Shown piece by piece: positions 2,682 through 62,958 of a stretch of DNA of 64,000 bases. A program made the position numbers and the translations under genes. The DNA is taken from contig OZ038378.1 of assembly GCA_964036045.1 (NCBI GenBank), positions 175,646,001 through 175,710,000 on the forward strand. The letters run 5' to 3'. Each line of letters begins with the position of its first letter. The stretch's first letter is position 1. Below the pieces are notes generated by a model. The model saw only the letters and a program-made list of their open reading frames with translations. It had not been told where the DNA came from and made no database searches. The DNA comes from Eutreptiella sp. 'Long Island Sound 2002'. Taxonomy: Eukaryota; Protista; Euglenida.

Positions 2682-2881
2682 AGTGGTGCTGAGTTTGTAG
2701 AGGCATCAAAGAACTAAACTGACTGGCGCCAAAGGTGCCAGGGAAAATTTTTGATTGCCCGAGGGCCCAGAGAAAAATTTAGCCCAACCACTTAAGGAGC
2801 CTGGGGAGGGGGGGTCCAGGAGTGGGTGGGTGGGTGGTGTGGGACCCCGCCCCGTCCCCCACTCTCGAGTGGTGCTGAGTT
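2682..2881. repeat. ~190-bp repeat segment bracketed by a 14-bp direct repeat
   Basis: agtggtgctgagtt at 2682-2695 and 2868-2881. The interior motif ggcgccaaaggtgcc resembles the ggcgcctttggcgcc / ggcgccttcggcg motifs at about 42260 and 50405. Confidence 0.5.
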
Positions 2882-3993: not shown

Positions 3994-4062
3994 ACCCCAA
4001 TATGTATACTTCAAAATGATCGCCACGTCGCGCTGATCATTTTGAGGTATGCATGTTGGGGT
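3994..4062. repeat. MITE-like palindromic hairpin (family B)
   Basis: accccaa..tacttcaaaatgatc-13 nt-gatcattttgaggta..ttggggt. Related copies at 41989-42057 (full) and 6135-6183 (one arm only). Confidence 0.8.
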
Positions 4063-4847
4063 CAAGATTGTTTTGTTCAAAAGATTTACCCCTCCGAGGG
4101 TGGGTGCCAGCAGCGAGGGTGGGTAGGGGGGGGGGGGGTCAAGATTTTTTTTTAATGTTTTGCCATCATTTTTGAATTCTCCATTCAATACTGAGCATTT
4201 TGAGTATACATTCATGTAGACTCAGCATTCGACAAAATTCTGGCCAACAATGGCTGTCAGGGTCGGGTATCTGATGAGGCGGCACTCCCATGGCCCTGAT
4301 TTCCTTCGAGCGATCGCGCAGACGCCACACACCCCCCGGCGGTGCACGGCTGCAGTGCCTGCCACAACATGCGTTCCCCAACGCTTCGGTGTCCACTCTT
4401 CAGTGCGGGGCGTGGCCAGTGCTACGACTATCACCGGATTTGACTTCAGAAAAAGTGGTGCATTTTTTTGCAAATTTTGCGAAGGCACAGCCACTTCGGT
4501 GGGAGTTGGCGGGAGAGGGAGGGTGCAAATGGCGGGAGACCGCAGGGCAGTGAATGGACAGTTGCTGGGGACCGCGCAGCACCTTCGGCTCGTCGCAAAT
4601 CACACATTTCCAGCGGCACGCCGTCGAAAGCCCCCGCAGGATGCGGCTCCGGACCGCAACGGCTGAAGGTCGCCGTCCAGCCCCAGGCCCAGTCCGCGGC
4701 GATACCTGACGCCGACCTCGCAGGCCACGCCCTCATGCCATCGTGGCATTGCGGGCCGGGCCTCCCTGTCTGCGGCGCCACGGGGCGTGTCGCGTGGCTG
4801 CGTTCTCCCGGCCATCAGCCCCCCTCGCGTGCTCCTCGCCCGGTTCG

Positions 4848-6907: not shown

Positions 6908-7447
6908 ATCAGAAAAGTTTTCCTTGGGAAAAAAATTAAATGTATCGAAGGGGCCCGAAATTGGTGGCCGACTTTAGGTACACAAACTTTTTTTTTTGTC
7001 GGAGGAGGTCACGGTCTCCACTGAGCCGTGGCCTGTTCCCCACCTTCCCTTTGGCCTGCAAAAGAGACCACAAAAGACACATCGCGTGCACTTCTTGTGC
7101 TGCATCGTACATCGGGTGCTCGGTCCGCCCCAACTGCCGAACGGCTGCAATGCGCCCTAACAAAGCCGCCCATCACGAGACCCGGGGGTGGTTTGGTTTC
7201 TGGTTTCCCGGGCGCCCCGGCGCGTGCCGTCGGGAAAGTTGCCGACACGCTCTCCCTGAGAAGGGCGCAAGGGAGGAGCGCACGCGAGACCGGGGGGTTA
7301 GGGAGGGTCATCGATCAGGAGGCACTCTCCACCGCCGTCCTCCACATCCACATCACAAATGGAGTCAAGGCCTGCGGTCATGCCCAGCACCGCACGACCG
7401 TAACACTGTCGAGTCAAGTCGGGGACGCGGAGGGGGCGGGAGGACAC

Positions 7448-7847
7448 CGGTTGTGCATCGGCGGTGCTGAAGCGCGAGCGCGTCCCATGCGCCCCATTCA
7501 CCACCACCGTCATCCCCGCGGCGCCGAGCAGCGTCCCGACCCCCTCCCCGCGGGAGACGGGCCGCGCCATGAGCAGGCGCCATCCGATGATGAGCAGCGG
7601 CTGCAAGTTGGTGAACATCACCGCCTGGGCGATGGTGGTGTACGCGATGGCGGCGTTGTACCCGCAGCCGCCGCACGACAGGTAGGCCCCGCACTTCACG
7701 ATGTCCGCCCACATCCGCGGGTCCCGCAGGAAAGGCCTCTGCTGGGGCTCAACACCGATGAGAGTGAGCCAGCAGAGGGTCACGGGGATCAGCGCCAGAG
7801 AGATGAGGGACGTCCGCCACCCCGCGACGAGGACCGCTGCCAGCAGC
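7448..7847 (-). CDS. EamA/DMT transporter internal exon (first EamA repeat)
   Basis: tacag|G acceptor in phase 2. AGWRTS..LALIP, YTTIAQAVMFTNLQPLLI and EGVGTLLGAAG are typical first-repeat motifs. The 3' donor is uncertain (7448 or 7502, both phase 0). Confidence 0.8.
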
Positions 7848-8073
7848 CTGTACATGCGCCAGTGACCGGAGCTTCCCAACCGCAGCAGCGGTACACAGCC
7901 CGAGGGAAAGGGGGTGGAGGGAGCAGCAGGTAGGGATCTAGTTGGGGGGGGGGGGGGGCTCCCCCCCCCCGATGACGAAATGACGGTCACTTATACCCTT
8001 CCCTGCAACCACCTCTACAAAGCAACCAGCTCCATGGATGTGTGTGTGTCATTTCAAAGAAGCATAGCGTTCA

Positions 8074-8085
8074 TGTGTGTGTGTG

Positions 8086-8133
<48 letters not shown>

Positions 8134-8176
8134 TGGGTGGGTGGGTGGGTGGGTGTGTGTGTGTGTGTGTGTGTGT
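8074..8176. repeat. Compound (GT)n(GTGC)n(GTGG)n(GT)n microsatellite in an intron
   Basis: Read directly. Confidence 0.95.
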
Positions 8177-8660
8177 TCAGGGCCGTGCTGCGGGACATAG
8201 CCTCAGGACCGGAAACGCAGGCACACGGTGGTGTGGCGCACGAGCGCAACAGGGGTCACGGACGCACACAACCGCACACGCCTCGATGCACAGGGCGCAC
8301 CGCGCGGGCGGCAATGCCACTGACAAGCCCCTCTCCTCCTTCCCCGCCCCCACCGGGTGTTGCGGTGGCTGAGGCTCTGGTGCTCTGGCCGCAGGACTCT
8401 ACCGGATTAGGCGTACAAACTGGTCGGGGGTCATCCTCATCCCTGTGCATGTGTGCGGAAACTTGACGGGGAGGTGGGGTATTGAGGGGGGAAACGGGGG
8501 AATACGCAGGGCAAATGGAAAACAGGGGCCGCAAAGATGCCGAGGGAGGGGTAGTGGAGGGGGCGGGGGGGAGGGGGGCACGTACCCTGCTCAACCAACA
8601 CCGCGCGTGTGCAGCCCCTCTGGCAAGCCCATGGGCCCATCCCGCACGGCCTGCACATAC

Positions 8661-8975
8661 TTATGGTCCGCTGGCACCGCCACCAAGTGTCCCACAGGGG
8701 CCATCAGGGCGAAGGCCGTGACCGTCAGACACAGAATCACCCCCGCAATGAAGGGCCGTGCATAATGCACCAGCGCATGATGCACCGTCGGCGTGTCTCC
8801 GCATTCCGCACTCTGGGACACAATGGACAAGGTCTTGACACGGGACGGGGGCACGGACGTCGTGCGCAAGGGGGCCGGTGCCTCCAGCGCAGGGGGCGGA
8901 TGCAGAAAGTTGCATGAATCGCTGTTGTCGATGAGGTACGCTTGCACCCCCATCTCGTGGCTGCAGGTGGCCGCA
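8661..8975 (-). CDS. EamA/DMT transporter exon (N-terminal region and TM1)
   Basis: Hydrophobic PFIAGVILCLTVTAFALMAPV. The AA|gtatgt donor (phase 2) joins the 7847 acceptor in frame to give ADHK-LLAAVLVAGWR. accag|T acceptor is phase 2. Confidence 0.65.
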   Translation of the reverse strand, partial: CGHLQPRDGGASVPHRQQRFMQLSASAPCAGGTGPLAHDVRAPVPCQDLVHCVPECGMRRHADGASCAGALCTALHCGGDSVSDGHGLRPDGPCGTLGGGASGP

Positions 8976-9479
8976 CTGGTTGGCACATGGCGCGTCAGGA
9001 AGTCTGAGACCGTCTCCGTGCACAGGGCAGCATCTTCCTGTGGGAAGCAGAGGGCGATGGGACTTTCAAGAACGAGCGCAGAGAACAGGCAATCGGTGAG
9101 CGAATATTGAAGGAAAAAAGGTACTGAGACGTCAGTGGCCAAGTGACGATTCACTGATGACAAGGGATCCAACAAAGACGAGCATGGGCAGGCGGTCTCG
9201 GACCACAGGTGGGGGATGACCCTGAGGCATGGTGTGACAGAGGGGCAGGAGGGAATTGTGGGGCATAAAGACAGTGGCGGTGTGACACTGGGTGAAAGTA
9301 GCATGGGAAGGGACGGGATTGCGTCCAGCACCAGTATTGACATTACTGGCAGCACTCTTGATCCCCTGCCGCACTCACCTCGACCGAGGAGATGACCAGT
9401 CAGGGCGTCGCATGCACCCCCGCACTGGACTCGGGGCTGCACACCACCACTGATCCTATCTCAGACAAATGCAGTGAAG

Positions 9480-10640
9480 CTGTTCCACCTCCCTCCCACC
9501 CATCCACCACACACATACACACATACATACGCCCCAAAAGAAAATCTGAGCAGTTTGACCCAAATACAGCCCTTTTTTGCCAAAATCAGCCCTAGAACCC
9601 CCCCAAAACCGCGAAATGAAGGAAACAGATGACATACGCCGCAGCCAGCTTGCTTTTCCCTTGTCAAAGAGCCCATCGGTGGCCTCTAAGTCCACAAGAA
9701 GCCCAAGAAACACCCCAAATATGGCCCACAATGGCCCAAAATCTGCGCAGTCTGGCTGCAAACAGCCCCAAACCCAGAAAGGGTCCCGGGGGGTGTAAGC
9801 CACAAAAAGTGCGTGATGCGACTGGATGAGGTGCTCTCGGGATAGGATTTCAACCCACGTAGCCCAAGATATCCTGCACCCCAGTACCAGTGCCCACTTG
9901 GCTCTGGCAAGCAGCGAGCTTGAGAGCCAACTGGTTGGGGTCAAAATGGGTCATCCTGGTCCACCAGGGGCAAAAAAAATGACTCTTGTCCACAAATGAT
10001 TCTGGACCACTTGGGATGCCAAAACAGGTGGTTTGATCCCGTTTTGAGCCAATTTGGGCTTGCTATGACCCTCCAAAGGTGCGAAAGAGCGTTGAAAATG
10101 GGCCAATTTGGGTCAAAAAACACGTAGTTCCAAAAATGATTATGGACCACTTGGAATGCTCCAAGAAGACAATTGAGCCCGTTTAGACCCTTTTTGACCC
10201 ATCTTAGCCTACCAAAAGTCCCAAAAAAGCCTTGAGCATGGGCCACTTCAGGACCAAAATGGTCCACAAATTGGTCAAAAACGCGTTTTTGCAAGAATCT
10301 TTCTTGACCACTTGGGATGCTCAACCAAGTGAAATGAATGCATTTTCAGCCCGTTTTGACCTATTTCGGCCCACCAAACCCACGTCGTGTCTCCTCAAAC
10401 GTCCTGCAAGGGCGTTTCTGGCTTGTACAGTTGCGACGTGCCCTGAAGCCACGCTCGGGAGCCATCTAGACTAGGGGAGAGGGACACCCCTCTCCCAAAC
10501 TCGAGATGGCTCCCCAGCGCGGCTCTAGGGTAGCCCACAAGCCTACACGCCGGGAATGGCCTCAAAGGATAGGGCTTGGCTTCGATGGGCTAAAATGGGT
10601 CGAAATGAGCCCAAAATGGCTCATATGATTTGCTTGAGCA
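9480..10640. repeat. Large modular dispersed repeat (family A) inside a transporter intron
   Basis: Shares aaaatgatcctggacca, gggtcaaaaa and ttttgacccattttt modules with 21.7-24.7 kb, 27.4-27.8 kb and 60.5-64 kb. Confidence 0.8.
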
Positions 10641-11034
10641 TCCCGCGCGGTCCAAGATCATGCCAGCCAAGGCACTCACCCACTAGACAGAGCGCCCGAC
10701 CCACGACACTCCCTCAGCCCACCAAGTCCCCAGCTACAGTACATTCCTCTGCCAATCCCCCAAGGGAAGCTGTTCCGGCCCCTTACACCCCCTCTAGGCT
10801 CATCATAGGCCCTCGGAAGTCTATGCCCCCATCCATCCCTTTGAGACACATGGGACGGCCAGTGGGGAACGGACTTGGCTCATCTCTAGTCCTTTGGCGC
10901 ACTCTTCGAACGGGTGACGGGGTTGGGGCAATTCAGGAGCACTGCACACGTGAACTTGAAGGCGCTGCTCATGCAATCCTGAGACCAAGGTATTCGTGCC
11001 GAGAAGAAAGGGTGTAGAGGAGGCCGGCAAGGAC

Positions 11035-11252
11035 TTGGAGGCGGACATGTTGGGCACGGAGAGCACGAAGTCCCGCTTGTGCGCATATGTTATCGACGCC
11101 ATCCGCGGGCCCATGGTGCTGGCGTCCCCCTTGGTGAGTGTAACAGCGCGCCGAGTCGAAGCTGCAGCTGCAGCACTGAGTAGAGGAGTGGTCTCCGATG
11201 GGGCTTCGTCATTCTTGGACACTACAATGCTCTTGGTACTGGCGGCAACCTC
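11035..11252 (-). CDS. Probable upstream exon of the EamA transporter (cytosolic N-tail)
   Basis: Ser/Ala-rich frame containing SETTPLL. AA|gtcctt donor in phase 2 is compatible with the 8975 acceptor. The 5' boundary is approximate. Confidence 0.45.
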
Positions 11253-11768
11253 CAGTGGACAGGACAGGCATGTGAGCGTCATGGGCACTGGAGCCCACAG
11301 CAGGCAACTTTGCATTGCATGCAAATTCTAGTGCCTTCAGCAAGGCACCTCAAAGAGGTGCACCCCTTGCATCCCAAAACACCTTTCTACCCTGTTGGGA
11401 ATGGTCTGATGCACAGCCAGCCCTGGTTTTTTTTTGGGCGCAAAAACAGCTTCCGCATAATACCACGCATGTAATATGTGGTGACACCACACATGCAATC
11501 AACGCCAAATGTCACCACATGTGCAATCAATGCCATATGTATTTGCAAGGCAACACTACAAGCGACAAAATTCCGAGCAAGCCAAATAGGAAGCAAAACC
11601 CCCTTGGACATATGCAAGCAACGCCGAAAGATGCTTGACGAGCGAACCCCTTGTGGTGCGCATTTGGGCATTGGAAAGCGTGATATATGTTTTGACATAC
11701 CCTTTTGTGTGTTGTACTACAGGGGTGAGCATACACTAGACAAAGAGGCAAACTGCAATTGACCTCTC

Positions 11769-11771
<3 letters not shown>

Positions 11772-11815
<44 letters not shown>
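11772..11815. repeat. (GA)n microsatellite
   Basis: Read directly. Confidence 0.95.
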
Positions 11816-11816
<1 letters not shown>

Positions 11817-12754
11817 AATGGTCGGTTCTGATCGACTGAGAGCACCCACCATAGACACTTGCAGGCATTAGTTCAATAGGTTCTGTGAGACTTTCCGATA
11901 CGCTTTCCACTATGTACAGTGGTTGACTGCTCGTATGCACCACACATTGAACCCGTAGGGCCATTCGAGGCCTCACTGCTTGTCTCGACACTCCTTTGGT
12001 CTTCGAGACATGCAGTTGGAATCGTTTTGGCCATGGGAATGGTGATTGCAGAGCAGTGTAGACCTGTACCCTAGATTGAATCGCAAATGCTAGTTCCGCT
12101 GTGTGTCATTAACATCGGTGCTGAAACCATCAGAACTGGCCATCCAGAAAATGGTGGAAGCCGTGTCGACACTTCCCACATCATGGTCAGAGGAGCTAGT
12201 AGCGGAGTTAAAAAATTTTCAGTAGACTCCCGGGTCAACCAATGGTGCATTCCCCACACCCCATAAAACCCCCCCCCACCCTCCCGGCAGTCCATGGGCA
12301 AACCCCACGGAAAAAAAACCCTGGCCGCCGGTATATAATAAGTATGTATACACACATTCTTTCTAATCCAAACACCAAACCAGTCATTGAAACGGTGGGA
12401 AAACGCCACTTCGGGTCACAAGGCCCAAGCGACCAATCTTCAAAACACTGAATTCTGGTGTTTTGAGTTTTTGAGATCGGTTGAGCTGCTGAGTGACACC
12501 GTCCTTCCTGTGAAGTTACACCATTTCTGCGGAATTTACGCCACTTTTCTTGGGAATTTACGCCGTTTTAGGGGAAAATTTACACCTATTTACACTACCT
12601 GGGGTCGGGGGGCCCAAAAGCCTGTAAACCCCCGTAAATAATCGGCTTGAGCAGGTTGCTACCTCTTTGCTTCGGCTTCACTCATATGCGCACTCATACC
12701 TCCCCACGTTGTCCTTACATGTGCAGTTGTGTGCAGTCTATACCCGGCAGGTAC

Positions 12755-12990
12755 AGACTATCGGGGGGGCCATCCTCCACCATCTGGCGACGGCCCATCA
12801 ACGGTACATCAATTGGGCGACCATGGTGGTGTACTCTATGCGAGCCCACAACCAGTGGCTGCACATGGCGTGTCAAGGGGTGGAACAGGTGTACTTTGCG
12901 TCTTTCCAAAAGGTCTCTCGGGGACTATGGGGGGTATACGAGGCCAAGCTGCGCGAATTCTGCTATCACCACTATGACAGGGCGCGAAGG
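12755..12990 (+). CDS. Possible exon of an unidentified gene
   Basis: Protein-like helical stretch (GAILHHLATAHQRYINW...VYEAKLREFCYHHYDRARRE) following cag acceptors; no family recognised. Confidence 0.3.
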
Positions 12991-14066
12991 GAAAAGTTTA
13001 CCCTCTTCTCTCACGCTGCATCCCATAGCACTCAGCAGCACCTGGCAGCAGAAGCCACTCGGTGGACTGAGACCGGAGACCACTGGTTGACCAACGCCCC
13101 GGGCTCAGAAAGAGCGCCATTTGGCTGCGGAGGCCAACTATGTCCGCCGCCTCCTTCTCAAGGGGAAACACGCCCATTCCCCCGACGGTATGACTGCGAG
13201 CGGGCGTGCTCCCATGATAGGCGGGATTCGTGTGTGGTACAGCTCACTGGGTCTCCACTGCGACAAGCCCACCATACAGACGCCATACAACTTATGGGAT
13301 CTCATGTTCGCTGGAATGCTGCATTCACAGACGACGGCTCATTCTCCCCCTGCACATTGGCCCAGGGCGTGTTTTTCGGCGCGTCCCACATCTGCCCTCT
13401 CTTCTCCTTGTTACACAACACCTTACCTTCACAGTCCTTGACAGGTGGGCTCCTCGGAGCCGTGGCAGATCACACCTCTGCATAATGTGTACAGTAGCAG
13501 GGAGTCCCTCCCCCCAATGGCGTCCCTACATGGGGACATGCCTCGCACGCATGAAGCTGAAAGTTTACCAATTCTTGCTGTACATATGATCTGGGCCTGG
13601 GCGCCCATTCCAGCAAAAATACAGTATTTCGACCAGGCCAGAAAGAAAGAAAAATGTTGAGGCACATTTTTGCCTCATAAGATGATGGTTTTCATGGGTT
13701 ATGGGCAGATGTGGATGCCTTTGAAGAAGATAATGACAAAGCATCAAGAAGTGCACCAGAACACAATTCATCATTGTCACTATCTTCTCCAGAGGCACCC
13801 TCATCTGTCCATAACCCATGATACTCGCTTTACCCAGAGCAGAGCAAGGCTTGAAATAGCATTCCAGCATTTTTTTTTTGCGGTGGAAACTTCACACTGC
13901 GTGCAAGGCTGCTTGCATAGGCGTTCCCTTGGACACCCACGCATCAGCATGGGCTTGTCTGGGGGGCTCTTAACATGGGCACCCCATTGGAACACGTGTT
14001 TTCTGCAGCCCACATTTGGACAACGGGGCGGTATGGAGGCTTCCTAGAAAACCATCCCCAGCATCC

Positions 14067-14330
14067 TTACCGTACCTGCATGCTTTCAAACAATGCCGAC
14101 CTCATCTCATCAATGGTGACGTTGAGCCGCAAAGCCATGGGCATTAGGTGCAACCGGGTGGTTAGAGCTGCCGGGAAGTGCTGCCGGGTCAGATGCTGGA
14201 AGTCTTGCCAACTCCAAGGGGCACTCGGCACAATGGCTGATTCGCTAGGCTCGCATTTCATGGAGGACATGTGGTGGAGGACCCTTCCTCCCAGGGACTC
14301 TGAACAAGAAAATGCTGTGAAAATAAAGAA
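14067..14330 (-). pseudogene. Possible decayed non-LTR RT N-terminal fragment
   Basis: VTIDEMRSALFESM resembles the it.eEv..al..m motif that precedes LINE RT cores; stops follow. Confidence 0.25.
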
Positions 14331-16139
14331 AGGAATAGATACGAGGAAACGGGCAAAAATCAAAACAGTTCGAGCAGAAAGGACACCATTTGGGACTTTG
14401 GGGGGGGGGGGGGCATGCTGAGACTGCGGTGTTGGCTGGCTGCAAACATCAGCAATAATCATGTCCATCTCTTGTGCAAGCATAGCAGGATGGGGCAATG
14501 AAGGCATCGAAGCATGACGTAATTGATTGGCTGACAAGTTCCAATCTCTTGCGAAAAGTGTGGGAGCCGTTGATACCAATCCTAAACTGCAACCAACAGG
14601 AGGCTAACACTGAATTTTCCCTACATTGGCCAAGTTGTTGCACTAAGTGGGCACTGCGTGGGCACTGCGTGCACCTGCCAACAAACTCACCCAAGATCGC
14701 CTGCCACCTGTCTGCTAGCACAGCAAATGGTCAAAGCCCACAGGATAACAACCAACACACACGTTCATGCCAGTGTACACATGATTCGGCGCATGCACTA
14801 TAGACGCTGTGATTTCATTACCACCCCTGCGTTCCTGGTCTGAGAGCCCCAGAGCACACTTTGGTTGTCCAAGAACAACAACAGCCGGGGCGGATCTTGG
14901 GCAACCCCTCGCTTCACCACTGCTGCCAACTCCAAGACCTGCTGGGTCACCCACCACTGGAACCTTCAAGGAGGACCAACCCTGTAAACAACACAGCAGC
15001 CCCAATCTTACTGGTGAGCCAGCATGCACAGCCTCAAAACAGTGTGTGGCGGGGCTCATAAAACAATCCAGCAAAGGGTTTTTGAGATGAATTGGTGGTT
15101 GGCTCGTGCAATGCGGACCTCAGAGCACGTGTGCTACAGGGCTGGCTAGAAAACGATGTGCCTAAATGTGCCTCAATGCGCCCCAATTTGGAGTGCTTCT
15201 GTCACATGCCAGCTTCCAGACCAACTAAAAGCACAGGGTACCCCAAAACGGTTATGCCAAAATTACAACAATGGGACAGCAAAAGCACAAACGTGCTGAA
15301 TTTGATGTGCCAACATATTGTCATTTTACACAAGATGGTTTCTTACTGTTGTAGTACAGCATTAGTATAGCTTGGTCCCTATGAGTAACTTACTGGAACC
15401 TACAACATCCAACTTTGTACAAACATCCATTACTTTGGCCCAAATGGTCTGGAGTTTGCTAATTGGGATGCCATATAGAGAACTGTCTATTCTCAACTTC
15501 TGTCAATGTCAATCTATGACAGTTTGGCAAAATTGGGAGCAAATCGAAGGAGATAGTATCAAGTGGAAGCAAGTAGGACCAACAAGGAGCAAATAAGTGA
15601 TTGGGAGCCATTGGAACCAAGCAGAAGCTAGTTGAAGTAGACCCGCCATGTCAATGGCCCAGGCCATGTTTCTTCTTTCGAAGGGGGGGGGGGGGCATTG
15701 ACAAGGGGGGCAATGTTTCTTCTTTCGAGAGCAGGGGTCCATTGACATGCGCATGGGGGGTCCATTGACTCGAATTCTCGTCAAAAGTCTAGAAGAATTC
15801 TTTGTACCCTGTGCAATCGCTTCAAATGTGGTTTGGAGATATGCTTTGGACCTCTTGCATCTTCACGATGGCTGTAGAGCTCATGTTAGCACTTTTTTTT
15901 TTGTTTACACTGTTTTGACCTTTTGTCGTCTTGCATATTTGTGGGTGCAGTGGTTGCATATAGGTGCATGTCACCGCAACCCCGGACAACCACACCATTC
16001 CTTGACAGCTGCAACTGGGGATGAAATGCTTTGAGACAACTCTAGACCTCAAGACATACCTTCAAATGAACACAAAAATGTTGTGTGCCCATCACATGCC
16101 ACAGTAGAGGCCAATGGACACCCACACTTCGGTGTGGCC

Positions 16140-53989: not shown

Positions 53990-54190
53990 CTCCTCGCTTT
54001 TATGCGCGACTCCCCCCCCCAAGTAGAAGTGGGCCGAAGGCCCCCGGGGGGGGGGGGCATTGGAGGGGGGGGGTTGAGGGAGGGGAGAGGGGGGGGGGGG
54101 GGCGGTTGGGAGGGTCGGTTGGGGGGGGGTCCACGTGGGGCGATTTGGGGTGGTGAGGGGGGGGGGCGGGGGGGGGGGGGGCGGGGGTGG
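53990..54190 (+). repeat. Very G-rich low-complexity tract (G-quadruplex potential)
   Basis: More than 12 runs of at least 3 G within 200 bp. Confidence 0.85.
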
Positions 54191-54417
54191 CACAGGCTCC
54201 CCTTGCCTCCCCTTGCCCTCAATCGAACCATACCATCACCATAAACCTAACCCTAACCTTTGCAGCCAGTTGGTTTGGCCATGCCAGCCATGTGAATTGG
54301 GCTGCACAAGATGCCCCAAATTTCGTTCATGGCTGCTTTTGCCACATCATTGCTCTCCATTTTGGACCCCAACACTCATTCTAACCCGAGCCTAGGGTGA
54401 GAGCTAGGGCTAGGGGC

Positions 54418-54652
54418 ATGGTTGGCACGGCAAACGAGGCAATAGAAGACTTATCAAAGAAACATCGTGAAACCAAGCTGAAAATGCGGGTGTAGATGGT
54501 GCTTTCGTCTTCCTATTGCATGAATCTCGTGCATGTGCATGTGTATGTGCATAACTTCGTCATAACACTTCATGGCAAATATATGCATTCTGTTATGTGG
54601 TCATCAACATGTGTGTTGCACTCCCATATGTTGTATTTGCACCATGCAGGGC
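54418..54652 (-). repeat. 3' pseudo-LTR (235 bp)
   Basis: Base-by-base identical to 60302-60536 on my reading. Confidence 0.95.
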
Positions 54653-54680
54653 CCCCAGTGTGTGTCTGGGCGCCCTGCTG

Positions 54681-57077
54681 TTACTCCTGTGTTCTCCTGC
54701 CGCGATTCTGTACCCATGTGTTCAGCTGGTGTCTGCACTGTTCTGGAAAACCAAATCTGGCGAGGCTCGTCTTGAAAGAGCCCTCCCACCATCGCCCTGG
54801 GTACCCTTTGGTGTGTAGCTCCTGAATTGTCTGCAAACAATTCTGACGCAGGCTCTGCCAGTCTGTCTGGTAGTATGTACACTTCAGTGCTAAGGCTGGC
54901 ACAAGGGAACGGAGGATGCTTCGAGCGTTCGGGGAGTATACATCGGGATAGCGTACATACCTTCTGGTGGGCTCTGGGTTATGATGGTATGACACTTTAT
55001 CCTTGAGTGCTACCGTGATGGTGCCTGTGTGTTGGTCGATTGTGAGGTGTGATTCAAGTGTCTGCAGTGTCAGGCCCTGTCCCTCCACCTGTAGCTTGAG
55101 GCCATATATGTGTTCAAACAGGGCTTGCACTTTGGGTAGTTTCAGGCGGCCCCGTGCCACACCCACCAGGTTATCACGAAATCTGAACGGGCGGTGTGGG
55201 AGAAGGGACGGTGTGATGTATTTGGTCACCTGGGAGCGCATCTGGTTCACTGTCTGGCTGTAAAACGCATGCTCCTTGTCGACACAGTACAGGCATGACA
55301 GCTGGGCAGACAGGGCACCCCCTATGGCGACTCCCCTGATTTGTTTGTATATTCGATTGCTCACAGTGAAAAGGCAGTTCTCCTCCAGTTCCCACTTCAC
55401 ATACTCGTATACCTGTTCAAAAGAGAAGTTTTCAAACTGGTCTCTGGACCCGGTACCTATTCTGTCCATCTTGTGTTCGCTGCGATGGATGGCAAACCAG
55501 ATGCCACCAGAGGCATCTGTTCGCTTTCCCCTGATGTCTACCAACAGATCATGGACGGTGCGGACAGCCTTCAAGGTGTCGGGTCGGCTCATGGACGGGA
55601 AAAAATCCCTAATGTCCAGCTCCCAGAGTGAATATGTGTCTGGCCTCCTGCGTGTTTTCTGTCTGGATGCATGGGCACTGACTGAGGCGGCCCATTGCTT
55701 GACGTCTGTGATCCTGTCCATATCCAGCGATTGGAGTTTCTGTGAGGCTTCTCTCAGCAACAGTGTTAAACAACGCCCCATTTTTCTGGAAAACCTTTTG
55801 AGGGGGTGTGCATAGTACGAAAAAACAATCCTGTGCTTCCATTCAGCAGTCGATTCTTCTTGGATTTTGTTTTTTGGTAGCTGGAATGCATGGGGAGGGC
55901 CCTTCCCCTTCCCTCCTTCCCAGAGTTTGGTCATTCCGTGTGCATCAGCGGAGCTCCGCAGCAGGTGCATGCAGTGCTCGCGGGCAGTTCGTTTGTTCTC
56001 GCACTCCTCTACGAGTTCAAACTGTGATTCATCTCCAAAGGCTGTGATCATGGTTTGGTAATACAGCCTGCGGCAAACGCAAACTGTCTTGCCTGTGTTC
56101 TTATCCAGTTGGAGGAAGACCAGGCCTGGATGTTGTTCTTTCGGGGCCTTCGAGCGGGACTTATGGAGGATACTTGGGATGGATGATCGGGCTGTTTCCC
56201 ATACTTCCTTGATGGCTGGGCGCAACAGTGCGTCCACCAACCACCCTTTATCCTTACCCAGCCGTCTGTGTATGCGGCATATCTGTGCACTGACTGAGGT
56301 TAGCGCAGATTCCAGTTCGTCCCAGGACGCCAACGTCGCATTGTTGCAGTTTTGCCTGAGGCATGCTGCGTCTGCATGGAATAGGCTACCCAGATCGCGT
56401 CCTTTACGTGCAAAAACGCATCCTTGGATGCGTGGGATGTCGGATGGCAGGGAGTGGCATGAGCATGGCTGTCTGGCTATACGGTGCATCTGTTGCCAGG
56501 TATGTTGTGGCCGTTTGGTGCAGAGAATTTCCGCAACCGTGGGGCCACGTTTGGCTGTGTAGCGCGTGACTTGCGTGATGTACTGGACAACGGCCCTAGG
56601 GAGACCCAGGGTGTGTAGTGCGCGTTTCACGCGTTGCTGTAGCATACTCAGATCTGGGTAATTGCATGTGGGGTATGGAATGGCAATCTGGGCTGGGATA
56701 GAGATCCCTGTGCGTCGTGCCACTATAGATCTCACCTTATGAAACAAAAGGTTATAGGTCTCACGCTCAAATCCTTTCTGTAGCCGGGTGCGGGCATGCA
56801 GGATGATCTCCAGCAACGTGTGTGCTGGTGTGTGGCATCGATGCGTGTGTATGATTTTGTGTGCTACCGCGCGCAATTCACGTGTGCTCCATGACTCCGC
56901 ATGTTGTTTGAGGTTCTGGGCCACCATTCGCCAGCGCTGTCCTCGCCACACACGTCGTTCTTTATTGAACACTCGGCCCATCGTGCGCATCCACTGTTGT
57001 TCCAACCGCCATACTGTCGCTTCGGTACAAACCTGTAAGGGTATCATAACCCATTCTGAGCTGCCTGTGTGTCGCAT
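54681..57077 (-). CDS. PLE reverse transcriptase plus the C-terminal half of GIY-YIG (continues ORF2 in frame past a TAG)
   Basis: LDKNTG, LPKNK, RIVFS, ELDIRDFFPSM, YKQIRGVAIGGALSAQL, FRDN and thumb ELHTKGYP motifs; begins with GIY-YIG end motifs (W..IPL, E..W, FN). Confidence 0.92.
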   Translation of the reverse strand: MRHTGSSEWVMIPLQVCTEATVWRLEQQWMRTMGRVFNKERRVWRGQRWRMVAQNLKQHAESWSTRELRAVAHKIIHTHRCHTPAHTLLEIILHARTRLQKGFERETYNLLFHKVRSIVARRTGISIPAQIAIPYPTCNYPDLSMLQQRVKRALHTLGLPRAVVQYITQVTRYTAKRGPTVAEILCTKRPQHTWQQMHRIARQPCSCHSLPSDIPRIQGCVFARKGRDLGSLFHADAACLRQNCNNATLASWDELESALTSVSAQICRIHRRLGKDKGWLVDALLRPAIKEVWETARSSIPSILHKSRSKAPKEQHPGLVFLQLDKNTGKTVCVCRRLYYQTMITAFGDESQFELVEECENKRTAREHCMHLLRSSADAHGMTKLWEGGKGKGPPHAFQLPKNKIQEESTAEWKHRIVFSYYAHPLKRFSRKMGRCLTLLLREASQKLQSLDMDRITDVKQWAASVSAHASRQKTRRRPDTYSLWELDIRDFFPSMSRPDTLKAVRTVHDLLVDIRGKRTDASGGIWFAIHRSEHKMDRIGTGSRDQFENFSFEQVYEYVKWELEENCLFTVSNRIYKQIRGVAIGGALSAQLSCLYCVDKEHAFYSQTVNQMRSQVTKYITPSLLPHRPFRFRDNLVGVARGRLKLPKVQALFEHIYGLKLQVEGQGLTLQTLESHLTIDQHTGTITVALKDKVSYHHNPEPTRRYVRYPDVYSPNARSILRSLVPALALKCTYYQTDWQSLRQNCLQTIQELHTKGYPGRWWEGSFKTSLARFGFPEQCRHQLNTWVQNRGRRTQE

Positions 57078-57089
57078 CGCCTCGTACAG

Positions 57090-58835
57090 CTAGTGCTGTT
57101 TAAGGCGCTTACCATATACTCGTTGAAACGCCCTACCCTCACGCTCATGTTCGTAATACCGCAAAATCAATTTACGGGGACCGTCTTTGCCGACCATGCC
57201 AATATACACTGTACCATACCTGCGGCTTACCATGGCATACACTATGTAGCATGCCACTGTCAGTGGGGTGAAGGGAGCTTGGCCCAAGCCAACAATCTTG
57301 CGGGCCCAACGCCATGGTGCATAGGGGAGGAGATCACGTGCTTTTTCCATGTTCTGGGCCAGCGCTTGCTCACTGCCTTCAACAGCAGTGTGTAGCAAGT
57401 GCTGTCGTTCCGCAGTCAAGTGATCCCACAGTTTGACACAGGCTTCTGTTTTCAATCGTTTCGCCATACATTGCAGGGGGGGCATATACCATGTTCCTTT
57501 GGACGTGGTTGTCACTGTGCTGAGAGCAGCCGCGTAGCGGTCCACAGGGAAACGGGATAGCACGTCCTGCAGTTCACTGGTGGTGGGAATAACATAGAAC
57601 CAGTCCATCTGTAGCATCATTTTCCTTTTCGTGTGTGTGCGTGCTGTGGTACGTGTGTGTGTGTGTGTCCACCGGTTTATGGGGAGTGCAGGCACTGTTC
57701 CTGTCCACATTCGAAAACCTTGCTTCTGGCCTGTCAGTGATTGCATCTGTGATTTCCAGTCATCCAAGTCACGTGGCACTGCAACAATGAATGTTGCGTC
57801 CGGGTAGGCTGTACGTAGCTGTGACAAAATAGACAAAGGCATCATGGGCTGTACTATCAGCAGTGCATGCTGTGCTGCAAGGGGTAGGCATGTGATCTCG
57901 TCGTCAAATGAGGGCATACCAAAGGGGCTGTCAGTTAGGAGGGGACTAAGTCCACGTTGGGATAATCCATCAATGACGGGAATGCCTATTGTATATTCCA
58001 AATGGAATAAATTATTCCACAAGCGGTACCATGTTTTTGGCAGTGACCACATACATGGGTTAAGGGCCGTTGTCGCCTGCAACTCAGTTTGCAGGGACTG
58101 CACGGCATCCACAAACTGTGTATGGATCATAGGGGTGAGTTCATCCCAGCCCAGGACATGGTGTCTTTGTGCAAAGCCTTGCCACAGTCGGCGAAGGCGG
58201 GCGCATCCTCGGATACGCTGTTTCAGTTTCAACGCTTCAGGAGTGGGGGGATCCTCTTTACCATCGATGTCGAACATTCGTAAGTCACGTGCATATGACA
58301 CAGAATTGTATTTTGTACACTCCTGCAAAGAAATCATTTGTTCAATTAATTTTTCCTGATGGGAGGTAGCGTGTGACATGCCCATGGCTAGCGTGTGCAA
58401 ACGGTGTGCCGGTTCGTGCGCTTCCGTTGTGTGTTGAAGAACACTCGGGGGAAGTGGAGAGGACAAGAAATTCGCGTGTGGCTCACCTTCATCCTGCGAT
58501 GAGGTTTCGGTAGTGGAGGTATCCGACACGGGTGCTTGTTTTTTCACCCATCCATTTTTTCGCACTCGTTTGTGGTGGCGCCGTGTGCGTTGCATTGACC
58601 GTTGTTGACGTCTGTCGTGTGTCGTGTGTGCCGTGTATCGTGTCGGTGTTGTGTGCACGCGTGTGCTTTTCTGTTGTGCTCGTTTGCGTGCGCGTGTCCA
58701 TCGTTGTTTGTGTTGGCTGTTTGCATGTGTGGTGTGTGGTGTGTATGGTGCTTGGTACCTTGTGCATGGGATGATTGTCCGGCTCCTGTGGGACCGGAGG
58801 ACGATGACTTCGTCATTGTCACTGGACGACATCAT
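57090..58835 (-). CDS. ORF2 N-terminal part: basic region, possible MTase-like segment, GIY-YIG N-half
   Basis: CYIVYAMVS..YGTVYIG......R..EH. Ends at a TAG followed in frame by LYEA and then the Met of the RT ORF. Confidence 0.85.
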   Translation of the reverse strand: MMSSSDNDEVIVLRSHRSRTIIPCTRYQAPYTPHTTHANSQHKQRWTRARKRAQQKSTRVHTTPTRYTAHTTHDRRQQRSMQRTRRHHKRVRKNGWVKKQAPVSDTSTTETSSQDEGEPHANFLSSPLPPSVLQHTTEAHEPAHRLHTLAMGMSHATSHQEKLIEQMISLQECTKYNSVSYARDLRMFDIDGKEDPPTPEALKLKQRIRGCARLRRLWQGFAQRHHVLGWDELTPMIHTQFVDAVQSLQTELQATTALNPCMWSLPKTWYRLWNNLFHLEYTIGIPVIDGLSQRGLSPLLTDSPFGMPSFDDEITCLPLAAQHALLIVQPMMPLSILSQLRTAYPDATFIVAVPRDLDDWKSQMQSLTGQKQGFRMWTGTVPALPINRWTHTHTRTTARTHTKRKMMLQMDWFYVIPTTSELQDVLSRFPVDRYAAALSTVTTTSKGTWYMPPLQCMAKRLKTEACVKLWDHLTAERQHLLHTAVEGSEQALAQNMEKARDLLPYAPWRWARKIVGLGQAPFTPLTVACYIVYAMVSRRYGTVYIGMVGKDGPRKLILRYYEHEREGRAFQRVYGKRLKQH

Positions 58836-60181
58836 CCTGTCATGGCTTGGGCCTGGGTAGGGTCCGTGCGGAACCGCTTGTCGCGCTTAGCAGCATCGCC
58901 CGCATCATCCTGGGAGTCGAAAATGCAGCTCTCCGGCACGCTTGTTTGATGGCCCGCAGTGTCTTGCACGGTGTACACCTTCTCGCCTTCAATCGTACGC
59001 ACGGATGACATATCAACTTGCACTTGGTACGTGTTTGTCTTGTTTTGCACGCGTATGTTCGCCCATTTCGTGGGGTGTTGTGTCCCCTTGTCAACCTCCT
59101 CGGCTCCCGCATTGTTTATTTCGGCCGGCGGAGTAGCAGGTGGCGCTTGCGGTGTGGAGAGACCCCAATGCTTGAGCAACTCATTGATGCCACTTTGCAT
59201 GTGTGCCTGTGCCGTTTTGCTTTCATTGAATTCGCCCCGGAGTTCGTTGACCGAATTGTTTATGTTGCTTGTGAGAGACTCAAGGTTGGTTACTCTTTCT
59301 TCAACATTGTCCAAACGCTTAGAATCACGAGAGGGCAACAATGGAGCGGGTGGACGCATAGAGGAGTTCAATGAGTTCACCGGGCGCTTTTTCAACGGGA
59401 GTGTCTTGTTCTTGTCGGCGGTGTCATTCTCATGAACCCGTTTGACCTCAATGGTGTCATCATCGTCGGTTTTGGTGTTGTGAAGGCGCTGGGTTGCTTG
59501 TTGTGCATCTTCTTCATTGTTAAACCGAAGAATCACGAAATCTTTAGATCTCTCAACGACCGGTGATTCCGCCGTGTCCGCACGTGTTAGCAAGAGCGTC
59601 ATGAGTGCATCATCAAATTCGGCGGTGATGCCCGTAGAGTCATGGAGTGAGATTTTGATAGCATGAGCAGCCGTAGGCGTTGCCTCGTCACATTCCATAC
59701 CGTCATCAATTGGCGCGTCTCCAAGAATGCCACTTGCTCCTTTCTCTACACCTGGTGCACGCATAGCAATATCGGCGAAGTCCAAGCCTTCATCACGCGC
59801 TTTCCTGAACAATGATCTGTTGGTGAGTGTTCGGCGCACGTTCAACGGTCTTCCCGTAATTTCTTCGCATTTGCCACCATTGTGTCCTGTACCGCCACAA
59901 TTCCAACACACTTCAAGTCGGATAATGTCTCCATTTTCATCGGTATCTTCGGCGTGTAGTTTCCGTGGACAATTTCTCGCCAAGTGTCCACTCTTCATAC
60001 AGAAAAAGCACAACATTTTGTCTCGGTCCTTCTTCTCACTCGGGTTGGATGACGGGCGTGGTTTTGGTTTTTTCGTATGTATGTGTCCTTTTGTGTCATG
60101 ATCGGTCAATGCTTTGCAATGGTTGCAATATTGGCGCGCGGGTGTGCACGTCTTCGTGGCGGCATGTTTCTTCGGGGCCAT
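58832..60181 (-). CDS. ORF1 nucleic-acid chaperone/gag-like protein (2 CCHC knuckles, RRM-like segment, coiled coil)
   Basis: CFFCMKSGHLARNC and CWNCGGTGHNGGKC; DFVILRFNNEEDAQQATQRLH....TIEVKR; heptad stretch LDNVEERVTNLESLTSNINNSVNELRGEF. Confidence 0.88.
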   Translation of the reverse strand: MAPKKHAATKTCTPARQYCNHCKALTDHDTKGHIHTKKPKPRPSSNPSEKKDRDKMLCFFCMKSGHLARNCPRKLHAEDTDENGDIIRLEVCWNCGGTGHNGGKCEEITGRPLNVRRTLTNRSLFRKARDEGLDFADIAMRAPGVEKGASGILGDAPIDDGMECDEATPTAAHAIKISLHDSTGITAEFDDALMTLLLTRADTAESPVVERSKDFVILRFNNEEDAQQATQRLHNTKTDDDDTIEVKRVHENDTADKNKTLPLKKRPVNSLNSSMRPPAPLLPSRDSKRLDNVEERVTNLESLTSNINNSVNELRGEFNESKTAQAHMQSGINELLKHWGLSTPQAPPATPPAEINNAGAEEVDKGTQHPTKWANIRVQNKTNTYQVQVDMSSVRTIEGEKVYTVQDTAGHQTSVPESCIFDSQDDAGDAAKRDKRFRTDPTQAQAMTG

Positions 60182-60301
60182 TGATGAATGTTCTCAAAGT
60201 ACGATGGTGTAGTAGATAAAGAGGCCAAACGCATTGGTGAATATTTGGTGTTCTTGAACTTTTACAATTGCGGTTTTTCGGGTCGCCGCAAAGGTTGTTG
60301 A

Positions 60302-60536
60302 ATGGTTGGCACGGCAAACGAGGCAATAGAAGACTTATCAAAGAAACATCGTGAAACCAAGCTGAAAATGCGGGTGTAGATGGTGCTTTCGTCTTCCTAT
60401 TGCATGAATCTCGTGCATGTGCATGTGTATGTGCATAACTTCGTCATAACACTTCATGGCAAATATATGCATTCTGTTATGTGGTCATCAACATGTGTGT
60501 TGCACTCCCATATGTTGTATTTGCACCATGCAGGGC
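60302..60536 (-). repeat. 5' pseudo-LTR (235 bp)
   Basis: Identical to 54418-54652. Confidence 0.95.
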
Positions 60537-62958
60537 TAGGGTTAGGGTCACCGAGCTGGTGGAACCAGTCTTGGTTTTATAACCCTTTTTAGGGTCTAGG
60601 GTGGACCTACCAGGTTTAGGAGCAGCAAGCAAGCAAGCAGCAGCACGTGCGAAATGGGGAAAAATCAGAATTCCGTCGTGGTGCTTCGGATTTGGGTGAA
60701 ATTTTGGTGGATGATACCTATGGGTGTGAAGTACAATCACACAAAGTTTGAGCAAGAAACTCAACGGTGGCGGCCGGATACAGTTGTCGCAAGTGGCGGA
60801 CCTCAGGTTCAAAAACTGCAATTTAGGGCCAAAAACAGCCATTTTTGGGCCAAAACAGCCCTAGAACACATTCAAAACGGCCAAACGAAGGGAAAGGGTG
60901 GGTACACTCTATGTGCGGCTTGACTTTCCCGTGTCAATGAGCCCTTTGCGGCCCTCTAACTCCACCATATGTCCCGGAAACGGCCCAAAAAGGCCCCCAG
61001 AAGCCCCAAATTCTATTGCCTTCGGCAAGGCACCTCGAACAGGGGAGAGGGACAACCTTTTCTGAGCCCCCCCCCAACACCCAAATAGGGTGAAAAACAC
61101 ATAAAGATGGGCTAAAACATGCTTTACATAGGATATTTGATCATTTTGGATGGTCAAAGTATCAAAAAAATCAGTTTTGGAAAATTCCATTTTTGAGCTG
61201 CCGAGGCTGGAAAACTGCATTAGCAGGTTGTGCCCTAGACCCCTTGGGAGCCCCCCCCCCCCAACACCCAAATAGGGTGAAAAACACATAAAGAGGGGCT
61301 AAAACATGCTTTACATAGGATATTTGATCATTTTGGATGGTCAAAGTATCAAAAAAATCAGTTTCGGAAAATTCCATTTTTGAGCTGCCGAGGCTGGAAA
61401 ACTGCATAAGCAGGTTGTGCCCTAGACCCCTTGGGAGACCCCCCCCCCCCAACACCCAAATAGGGTGAAAAACACATAAAAGGGGGCTAAAACATGCTTT
61501 AAATCGCATATTTCATCATTGTAAGTGGTCACAATGTCAAAAAAATGCTTTGCAAAATTTTCCATTTTTGACCTATAGAGGGTTGAACCACCTACAAACA
61601 GCAATTTTGAAGCTTTTGGGGGGCCCATGGCTCGGGCTATATGGGCTTGGCAGCCACTACGTGGGTCCCCGTGGGTGCTCAAGTACCCGTATTGTCATTA
61701 AATCATCACCCAAACCCATCCAAGGGGCGACAGAAGGGTTTCCGAAAAAGTCGAATTTCGGAAATCTTGCAGGTGTCACTGAACAGCCTTATCCAGCGTG
61801 AAAACGGCTCACTAGCAAGTCCTCACTAGCAAGGGCCCATAGAGGGGGGCGACCAGGGGTACCCGGAGTTCGGACCCGGGTCCCCCGCCATGGGTTAGGG
61901 GGTCCATGTACAAGAAAAAAGTTGCCCGGGACCTGGGTCCAAATCCACACACAGCACCTAGAATATGCAAAGAAGTTTTGACCCCCCCCCCCGACACCCC
62001 CCCCCACCCCCCCAAAAAGGGGTACCCGGGTACGGGGGGGTATAGGGGATCATTTTCTCTCCTAAAATGATGATTTTACAAGGGGTTGGACATCCGGTAC
62101 CATACCTTGGGGTATGGTACGCGAATGACCCCAAAAAAGGGGGGTATATGGCGTACGCACCTGCGCTTGATCTAACAACCCTCTTTGAGGTGATTTTGTG
62201 TAGACTAGCTGCCAACAGCCACAAACCAAGAATAGGCCATATCTTTGGCTACATGGCTCAAAACGCGATTCCGAGGGCACCTAATCCACTTGCAACCCCC
62301 CACTTTTTGTGGTTTCCACCCCTCAGAATTGCCTAAACGGACGCCGAGAACCCCGTACCTAGGCCCGGTAGGCTGCGGCAAGCTGCAAGCTCAAGCCCAA
62401 ACAGGTGGGTGCCCAAATGGGTCAATAGGGTCCCGTAGGGCCAAAAAGATGACTTTTCTCAAAAATGATCCTAGACCATGTGTGATGCTAAAACAAGTGT
62501 TTTTGGACTGTTTTGAGCTTGGGGTGGCCCATTTTGGCCCTCCGAAAATCCCAAAATGCCTTGAAGATGCGCTGTTTTGGGACCAAAAATGGGTCAAAAA
62601 TGGGTCAAAAACGCATTTTTCCAAACCTCATCCTAGACCATTTGGGGTGCACCAACGGGTGAAATGAGCCCATTTTGAGCCCATTTTGGGGGCATTTTGG
62701 CCCCTCAGAAGTCCAAAAAAGCCTTGAAAGTGGGCCTTGTGGTGAACGGGATCACTTGCAAGCTGATTCCACCCTGTCAACGGACTTCAATGTGTGACTC
62801 ATTGGTGTCCCTCACCATTCATAGCTGATGTTCCCTCCCCCACCAGCTCGGTCCCAATATTCAGTCTTGATTAGGGTTAGGGTCACCGAGCTGGTGGAAC
62901 CAGTCTTGGTTTTATAACCCTCTTTAGGGTCTAGGGTGGACCTAACAGGTTTAGCAGC

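Follow-up and report, generated by a model that had tools for sequence, protein, structure and literature searches.

A probable Penelope-like element with an N-terminal-type GIY-YIG endonuclease and a conserved upstream ORF1 in a euglenid genome

Introduction

What kind of retroelement carries, ahead of a seemingly Penelope-like reverse transcriptase (RT), a separate protein assembled from modules familiar from long interspersed nuclear elements (LINEs), and does that protein truly belong to it? The question is raised by positions 54,418 to 60,536 of a 64-kb window, by which we mean the whole stretch of 64,000 nucleotides analysed here (contig OZ038378.1, positions 175,646,001 to 175,710,000, of assembly GCA_964036045.1) from the euglenid Eutreptiella sp. 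'Long Island Sound 2002'. An earlier note on this DNA had read the region as a Penelope-like element (PLE) with a LINE-style first open reading frame (ORF1). We report that the region is very probably one insertion of a PLE with two open reading frames (ORFs), belonging to the N-terminal-endonuclease clade and of Chlamys type, in a euglenid genome. Coordinates below are positions in the window, and all coding of the element lies on the minus strand.

PLEs are the retroelements nearest telomerase. No other major retrotransposon class has so poorly understood a transposition mechanism, and no in vitro system is available; endonuclease-bearing PLEs usually have one ORF, and partial tandem copies are the norm (PMC8557442). 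In the N-terminal-endonuclease clade, comprising Naiad and Chlamys, a GIY-YIG nuclease precedes the RT and is accompanied by a CxC linker, a modified DKG motif, an insertion in the fingers domain (IFD), pseudo-long terminal repeats (pseudo-LTRs) and usually no hammerhead ribozyme (Craig et al. 2021, PMC8557442). Chlamys differs from Naiad in having neither the CCHH pair in the GIY-YIG core nor the CX2-5CxxC linker, and the hosts given for the two are green algae, streptophytes, Physarum and animals, euglenids being unmentioned (PMC8557442). The same paper describes an upstream ORF with a gag-like zf-CCHC domain in Chlamys-2_cBra from Chara braunii, an optional coiled-coil ORF1 in some PLEs (legend to its Fig. 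1), and an insertion bias of Chlamys towards (CA)n or (C)n microsatellites (PMC8557442).

Architecture of the element

The element is enclosed by direct repeats of 235 bp (54418-54652 and 60302-60536), which are identical at 235/235 positions, bearing out the earlier description of identical terminal repeats around two ORFs. Their starts lie 5884 bp apart, which is the length of the unit, and the repeat upstream of the unit is a partial copy of the element's own last 235 bp. The 3′ pseudo-LTR (54418..54652) is the true 3′ end of the element, closing in GCCGTGCCAACCAT without poly(A), and the same terminus is found in seven copies, followed by unrelated flanks; the 5′ pseudo-LTR occupies 60302..60536, and the element termini read GCCCTG...AACCAT. 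An untranslated leader, read from the sequence (60182..60301), joins the 5′ pseudo-LTR to the start codon of ORF1 (58832..60181), which encodes a putative RNA-binding accessory protein of 449 aa. The ORF1 stop codon TGA and the ORF2 start codon ATG overlap as ATGA (58832..58835, in the string GGATGATG), placing ORF2 in the -1 frame.

ORF2 (54681..58835) is a frame of ~1384 codons that in the window copy consists of two same-frame pieces, 57090-58835 (581 aa) and 54681-57077 (798 aa), between which stand a TAG and four codons. The in-frame TAG (57090..57092) is confined to the window copy: other copies have CAG, as seen in contigs of runs X2, X5 and X6 (57092 A>G on the plus strand), sister copy L003 has Gln, and the intact frame in C6, which is the same copy as L003, is 1401 aa long. 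Judged from these sequences, the TAG is a nonsense mutation peculiar to the window copy, and the insertion that carries it is otherwise young, as follows from the identity of its repeats. Because the CAG-to-TAG change truncates ORF2 within the nuclease domain, the window copy cannot make ORF2p. The frame of ~1380 codons with GIY-YIG upstream of the RT that had been proposed earlier therefore stands in length and order, with a stop codon that had gone unmentioned; the nuclease described there as N-terminal does lie upstream of the RT motifs, and is itself preceded by ~520 further ORF2 residues.

Association of ORF1 with the RT

The earlier note had asked whether ORF1 always travels with the RT, since its absence from other copies would point to chance nesting. 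In the 2.28-Gb eukaryotic assembly searched, the RT piece gave 57 scored matches from 6,187 first-look candidates. The window's own family, family A, is represented in full length on C6 and C24 (99% identity), with further deleted or truncated copies besides, and its three full-length copies are 99-100% identical. Further families in the genome have RTs 32-43% identical to that of the window and intact open frames of 1353-1435 aa, including many intact 1411-aa copies in family B. Together with the identical repeats, these near-identical and intact copies speak for recent activity. Homologues of ORF1 in the same genome, encoded by ORFs of 435-577 aa and 27-36% identical, share the strand of the RT matches and lie upstream of them.

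The spacing from ORF1 start to RT-match start in these own-genome searches is 3104 bp in family A (open frame of 1401 aa, three copies; 3112 bp in C24), 3266 bp in family B (1411 aa, 13 copies), 3104-3105 bp in family C (1393 aa, three copies), 3111 bp in family D (1434 aa, two copies), 3123 bp in family E (1423-1435 aa, two copies) and 3089 bp in family F (1365 aa, one copy). A constant spacing thus holds for at least 24 copies from at least six families, with RTs 33-40% identical. Because the spacing is fixed across families, we conclude that ORF1 is an integral component of the element rather than an insertion nested in it, and that the two-ORF design is ancestral to a sizeable subclade rather than an accident of the window locus. 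Among the matches listed, families ~32% identical and with ORFs of 1353-1357 aa show no nearby ORF1. In deleted copies (C15 and C3; L004 and L009), ORF1 is joined straight to the RT.

The own-genome linkage is read from match coordinates, and three external contigs add sequence to it. The first, L031, is a family B element on a European Nucleotide Archive (ENA) contig, in which an ORF1 with three knuckles, an RNA-recognition motif (RRM) region, the RVTNLES coiled coil and the KWAN...VPE domain is followed by ORF2. L032 repeats the ORF1-ORF2 plan of L031 at 20% identity. L035, from an unrelated Sequence Read Archive run, contains the C-terminal half of an ORF1, in which a coiled coil accompanies a beta3-alpha2 motif like that of an RRM; it has TGATG at the start of ORF2, and beyond ORF2 it runs on into a further tandem unit, the beginning of which bears knuckles (hhalign probability 90%, E 1.4e-6). 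The answer that ORF1 travels with the RT accordingly extends beyond the host genome. Profile comparison gave no significant match to ORF1 for the RRM part of L035 or for a 74-aa ORF fragment upstream in L034. A word-indexed protein search with RT and ORF1 found only proteins of ENA records, those checked being from assembly ERZ25074135.

Predicted domains of ORF1

From motifs and predicted structure, ORF1 appears to consist of two to three zinc knuckles, an RRM, a long helix and a beta-barrel. The two canonical knuckles, CFFCMKSGHLARNC (residues 58-71, 59969..60010) and CWNCGGTGHNGGKC (residues 92-105, 59867..59908), both have the pattern CX2CX4HX4C. Pfam zf-CCHC matches two stretches of the window ORF1 just below its cut-off (E 0.002) and the family B ORF1 above the curated cut-off, and the Cys and His residues of knuckle 1 are invariant across the aligned ORF1s. 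A degenerate knuckle nearer the N-terminus (residues 19-33, 60083..60127) has His in place of the final Cys; at that position a sister family has a variant knuckle ending in Cys (YCRSC...INC).

The putative RRM-fold domain (residues 166-257, 59411..59686) is recognised by topology and by two structure searches. Residues 173-249 of the AlphaFold2 model follow a beta-alpha-beta-beta-alpha-beta order; the first 35 rows of a Foldseek search of the PDB are all RRMs (E 5e-3 to 2e-2, prob 0.99); and a VIA search of 48,161 chains returned RRMs at Z 8.8-7.4 over 70-86 aligned residues, with root-mean-square deviations of 2-3.5 Å. Pfam RRM_1 reaches E 0.004, under its cut-off.

Downstream of the RRM lies a predicted coiled-coil helix (residues 282-341, 59159..59338) with the conserved RVTNLES motif, of which R-x-TNLE is invariant in the ORF1s of three families; residues 285-338 are modelled as a single 54-residue helix. 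A three-copy prediction of residues 275-449 gave an association score of 0.70, compared with 0.00 for the best of three controls, with parallel, in-register, heptad-spaced contacts from residue 282 to 341, contact agreement between runs of at least 32% and partner pLDDT of at least 51. A score of 0.70 is reached by 21/30 proteins solved as one-chain pairs and by 0/23 solved as single chains, and the prediction supports self-association of the helix.

The C-terminal domain (residues 371-435, 58877..59071) is modelled as a beta-barrel of five strands and a helix at pLDDT ~80. Its fold is not securely named, the one Foldseek row being a chromo-barrel at E 0.02, and its KWAN..VD.SS...VPE residues are kept in family B. 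Sequence and modelling thus agree with the two CCHC knuckles, RRM-like fold and coiled coil that the earlier note had proposed for ORF1, and its suggestion of AlphaFold modelling has yielded, besides the RRM topology and the long helix, a C-terminal beta domain.

ORF2 and its relatives

ORF2 opens with a basic, low-complexity stretch rich in R, H and T by composition count (residues 1-145, 58401..58835), possibly a nuclear localisation signal. It is followed by a conserved domain of ~370 aa ahead of the nuclease (residues ~146-520, 57276..58400), in which families A and B share 28% identity (E 2e-49; the L031 counterpart lies at 6950-8150) and which has no match in Pfam, PDB sequences or the Atlas. 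The putative GIY-YIG endonuclease (56958..57257), identified by alignment to relatives that match PF01541, has the motif YIVY-x10-YIG at residues 530-549 of the first ORF2 piece, with R-x3-H, E and N beyond, and it contains the TAG; its core, YIVYAMVSRRYGTVYIG, is without Cys, and no CxxC precedes it. Between the nuclease and the RT lie a CxC motif, PCSCH (56454..56468), and, after it, a DK motif, LDKNTGK (56088..56108), the counterpart of the PLE DKG motif. The predicted RT core and thumb (54780..55877) include RT1-2 (KNK...WKHRIVFS..HPLK), motif A (ELDIRDFFPS, 55590-55628), motif B (QIRGVAIGGxxSAQL, 55287-55349), motif C (FRFRDN, 55158-55187) and the thumb (RYPD..SPNA).

From 1.84 billion representative proteins, a profile built on four euglenid families drew 1,500 matches at E <=1e-3 and 109 at E <=1e-30, and full-length relatives of 830-1170 aa align with ORF2 end to end. 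Pfam GIY-YIG (PF01541) is found at the N-terminus of 5/8 full-length relatives, three of them above the curated cut-off. When 37 RT-core relatives are aligned, 32 extend over the CxC column and 31 of these have the motif; a DK or DR motif occurs in 34 of 37. The distance from the motif A Asp to the motif B Gln is 91 aa in the window RT and 84-109 aa in 37/37 relatives, the comparison being drawn within this set.

The structural comparison used an AlphaFold2 model of an intact sister copy (898 aa, 94-sequence alignment; pLDDT 93.4, pTM 0.82), which has extra helices and strands in the IFD region. In a Foldseek search of the PDB, each of the 17 best matches is a TERT (E 8e-10 to 2e-6). With VIA, TERTs score Z 19.7-13.5 over 360-477 aligned residues (model residues 278-898), R2 scores Z 13.5 (289 aligned) and LINE-1 ORF2p Z 13.4 (312 aligned). 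Neighbours by features and shape in the ESM Atlas are clusters of ~850-1050 aa with GIY-YIG, RVT_1, HTH_animal and DUF8422, the last two being families associated with animal PLEs, and one neighbour is a streptophyte RT-fragment cluster. Judged by predicted structure only, the RT belongs to the PLE/TERT lineage. The modelled likeness to TERT extends over ~450-475 residues and takes in an IFD-like insertion as well as the part that precedes the fingers. Identity is only ~10%, however, and unlike TERT the window RT comes joined to a nuclease, in many dispersed copies with pseudo-LTRs at their flanks.

Set beside the published characters, the element falls within the N-terminal-endonuclease clade on the Chlamys side, in agreement with the Naiad/Chlamys-type arrangement read earlier. 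Its GIY-YIG lies within the RT ORF, with the GIY, YIG, R, E and N columns aligned to PF01541-matching relatives; the nuclease is N-terminal to the RT and joined to it through CxC; the A-B insertion is of IFD size; and the 235-bp repeat copies the element 3′ end, a tandem next unit being present in L035. No canonical hammerhead was found: a search of Rfam at E up to 1 gave 0 RNA-family matches, and the element has no CTGANGA core. It shares with Chlamys all of these and also a nuclease lacking the CCHH pair and the CX2-5CxxC linker, and a DK motif (here DKN) without a fixed third residue, and its unit of 5.9 kb lies inside the published Chlamys range of 3.3-8.2 kb. It departs from Chlamys in its euglenid host, its extra ~370-aa ORF2 domain, its separate four-module ORF1 and the lack of a clear (CA)n or (C)n bias. 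Chlamys-2_cBra likewise has a zf-CCHC ORF upstream of the endonuclease-RT ORF; it is set apart by a canonical 3′ hammerhead, absent from the window element, and by a published description of its ORF1 that mentions no RRM, coiled coil or C-terminal domain. With Naiad the element has in common the domain order, CxC, IFD and pseudo-LTRs, and it lacks the CCHH of the Naiad GIY-YIG, the CX2-5CxxC linker, the DKA motif and the single ORF of ~1,000 aa.

In a tree of 37 RT cores (423 columns, quick IQ-TREE search, unnamed relatives only), the four euglenid families form one clade (SH-aLRT 99), sister to the metagenomic sequences P0004, P0007 and P0009 (98), with P0008 and P0014 branching next (92). 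Motif C is RDN in three of the four families and HN in the fourth. Across the tree, DN in 24 rows and HN in one leave 25/37 without DD; these rows include all the euglenid families and rows with a Naiad-like Cys pair in the nuclease, and DD marks a well-supported clade of 12 rows (97). The relatives form a continuum that includes both DD-bearing and Cys-pair members. From these alignments RDN is widespread in this PLE clade and no peculiarity of the window copy, and the existence of young intact copies suggests that the D-N enzyme works.

Alternative explanations

Could ORF1 be foreign to the element, a neighbouring or nested gene caught between the repeats by chance? The single ORF of most endonuclease-bearing PLEs (PMC8557442) speaks for this. 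The homologues at constant spacing in at least 24 copies and six families already refute it, the ORF1 stop and ORF2 start codons overlap, and L031, L032 and L035 show the matching layout, so that its probability is virtually nil. A separate matter, compatible with a two-ORF PLE, is where ORF1 came from. Knuckles, an RRM and a coiled coil together are typical of LINE ORF1 proteins; mammalian L1 ORF1p consists of a coiled coil, an RRM and a C-terminal domain, and LINE ORF1p types with an RRM plus knuckles exist. Like these, the window ORF1 has an RRM, CCHC knuckles and a putative oligomerising coiled coil, and lies upstream of the RT ORF, with a stop/start overlap as in some LINEs. ORF1 might thus have been captured from a co-resident euglenid LINE rather than inherited from a PLE ancestor. 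This typical module set favours capture, as do the richness of the genome in retroelements (61,141 RVT_1 candidates) and the presence of ORF1-like ORFs of 600-670 aa that adjoin none of the listed PLE RTs. An own-genome RVT_1 search, its list dominated by one high-copy family, showed no overlap with these unlinked ORFs. The module order, knuckles, RRM, coiled coil and beta-barrel, is unlike that of the described LINE ORF1p types, and the partner RT is TERT-like with GIY-YIG rather than that of a LINE with an apurinic-type (APE) or restriction-like (RLE) endonuclease. The Pfam LINE ORF1 families have no match in the window ORF1, we found no sequence link to any LINE ORF1, the best ESM Atlas score was 0.77, to generic CCHC and RRM clusters, and the deeper relative L035 already carries ORF1. 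We consider capture unlikely, and take ORF1 to resemble ORF1p in its probable working without placing it among the LINE ORF1 proteins.

The element as a whole might belong to a non-PLE class, or be LINE-like, having joined GIY-YIG, a TERT-like RT and ORF1 independently. Such an origin would accommodate the lack of a Pfam RVT_1 match on the window ORF2, the DN of motif C, the resemblance of ORF1 to LINE ORF1s and the extra 370-aa domain; it is nevertheless very unlikely, since CxC, DK, the IFD-sized insertion and pseudo-LTRs make up the published Naiad/Chlamys diagnostic set, TERT is clearly the best structural match, before R2 and L1, the relatives grade into DD-bearing and Naiad-like members, and the Atlas neighbours include PLE-type clusters. 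Nor does it seem at all likely that the repeats are true LTRs of an element that replicates in the LTR manner, its ORF1 serving as the Gag of a particle and target-primed reverse transcription playing no part. The identity of the repeats, the nearly constant start of the 5′ repeat in three independent copies and the Gag-like knuckles of ORF1 would all suit that reading, to which we give only a very slight chance: ORF2 has no protease, RNase H or integrase by Pfam or in the model, the ends lack the TG...CA of LTRs, a putative nicking GIY-YIG nuclease is present, the RT is TERT-like and not Ty3- or Ty1-like, and partial tandems are usual in PLEs, with a next unit in L035.

Against the preferred reading, a two-ORF PLE of Chlamys type, several points must be set. 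The window ORF2 stays under the Pfam thresholds for RVT_1 and GIY-YIG, and single-sequence and profile comparison with PDB sequences gave nothing significant, so the ORF2 assignments are drawn from motifs, relatives and predicted structure. The placement with Naiad/Chlamys likewise uses diagnostic characters and not a phylogeny with named clades. Motif C is RDN rather than the usual DD, its activity being judged from young copies only, and the Chlamys microsatellite bias is not evident, the window copy alone lying in CCCTAA/CCCTAG-like repeats. For ORF1, the AlphaFold2 model is poor (mean pLDDT 47.8, four sequences; 62-69 in the RRM part), the three-copy association score is judged against a two-copy calibration, and a coiled coil may score well because the predictor has memorised similar ones. 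The RNA evidence discussed below is weak, as metatranscriptome contigs could be DNA carry-over.

Expression and a possible mechanism

Evidence of expression is at the contig level only. In one estuary metatranscriptome, eight small contigs match ORF2 and the 3′ end at 97-99% identity, and four runs of unspecified kind, under two organism labels, contain the element.

The arrangement of the element would be consistent with the following course of events. A bicistronic RNA would start in the upstream pseudo-LTR; the 5′ repeat starts within ~10 nt of one point in three independent copies (the window copy, L004 and L009), and such a constant start would fit this origin better than random 5′ truncation. 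ORF1 would be translated first, and ORF2 by termination-reinitiation at the ATGA overlap, as suggested by the absence of a slippery site and by the recurrence of the overlap in L035; -1 frameshifting from ORF1 to ORF2 was set aside, no slippery heptamer being present in the last 120 nt of ORF1. ORF1p may then form oligomers through its parallel coiled coil and coat the element's own RNA in cis with its knuckles and RRM, in the manner of LINE ORF1 proteins, by analogy with which a packaging role is proposed. The GIY-YIG of ORF2p would nick chromosomal DNA, and its TERT-like RT would copy the RNA by target-primed reverse transcription.

The host context includes trans-splicing. When the genome was queried with the 24-nt core of the Euglena gracilis spliced leader, 5,458 matches (<=1 mismatch) were obtained, compared with 0 for the reversed control, which points to a host of the Euglena group. 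The matches occur on both strands and are dispersed along chromosomes rather than confined to tandem arrays of spliced-leader RNA genes, which suggests many retroposed leader-carrying copies.

Relation to published elements and significance

Much of the framework is already published, namely the PLE class, the permuted Naiad/Chlamys clade, the upstream zf-CCHC ORF of Chlamys-2_cBra and the coiled-coil ORF1 of some PLEs. The earlier suggestion of an undescribed PLE lineage with a dedicated chaperone is therefore upheld as regards a conserved four-module ORF1, and reduced in scope by the zf-CCHC and coiled-coil ORF1s in print. We found no description of a knuckle-RRM-coiled-coil-beta-barrel ORF1 or of its conservation across a radiation of families, and none of a euglenid host for PLEs of this clade or of the extra ORF2 domain; in the literature consulted, Euglena and Euglenozoa are linked with PLEs only by generic mention. 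It is conceivable, although we advance it tentatively and as somewhat short of probable, that euglenids harbour an undescribed radiation of N-terminal-endonuclease PLEs in which the four-module ORF1 is an obligatory and anciently retained partner of the TERT-like RT, so that a LINE-style two-protein ribonucleoprotein (RNP) would have arisen in PLEs independently or by capture of a LINE ORF1, together with an extra 370-aa ORF2 domain and a functional RDN motif C.

These elements extend the N-terminal-endonuclease PLEs to the Euglenozoa, a supergroup missing from the list in the founding description (PMC8557442). A young radiation of several PLE families, with a well-modelled ORF2 (pLDDT 93), a putative dedicated RNA-binding ORF1 and a culturable host, should provide useful material for asking whether PLE RNPs are coated by ORF1p as in LINEs, by what means a trans-splicing organism translates the ORF2 of a bicistronic RNA, and whether RDN supports reverse transcription.

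Insertion sites and neighbouring sequence

The window copy lies between CCCTAA/CCCTAG-like repeats on both sides, and in six other copies the 3′ flanks are unrelated, none of them a microsatellite; no fixed target was seen among the copies compared. A G-rich tract of 160 bp with runs of 8-14 G (54036-54195, plus strand; C-rich on the element strand) lies ~220 bp past the element 3′ end; Chlamys is reported to target (C)n, but this tract is not at the junction. Just upstream of the element, 61067-61628 contains three tandem copies of a 187-bp unit, the second and third being 98% and 68% identical to the first.

The external contigs have features of their own. In L031, a perfect inverted repeat of 4,836 nt (1-4836 and 10486-15321) surrounds the family B element, beginning 258 nt before the ORF2 stop and extending into the flank; it is either an inverted 5′-truncated copy of the sort typical of PLE insertions or an assembly fold-back. 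In L032, which represents another euglenid PLE family, the spacer between ORF1 and ORF2 (3240-3700) contains ~450 bp of repeated TTGGCGCGCCAA palindromes, probably a small nested insertion. Adjoining the PLE copy in L032 are a Ty3-like pol with RVT_1, RNase H and rve (8580-11180, minus strand) and a DDE_Tnp_4 transposase gene (11976-12455, minus strand), and the region is therefore transposon-dense.

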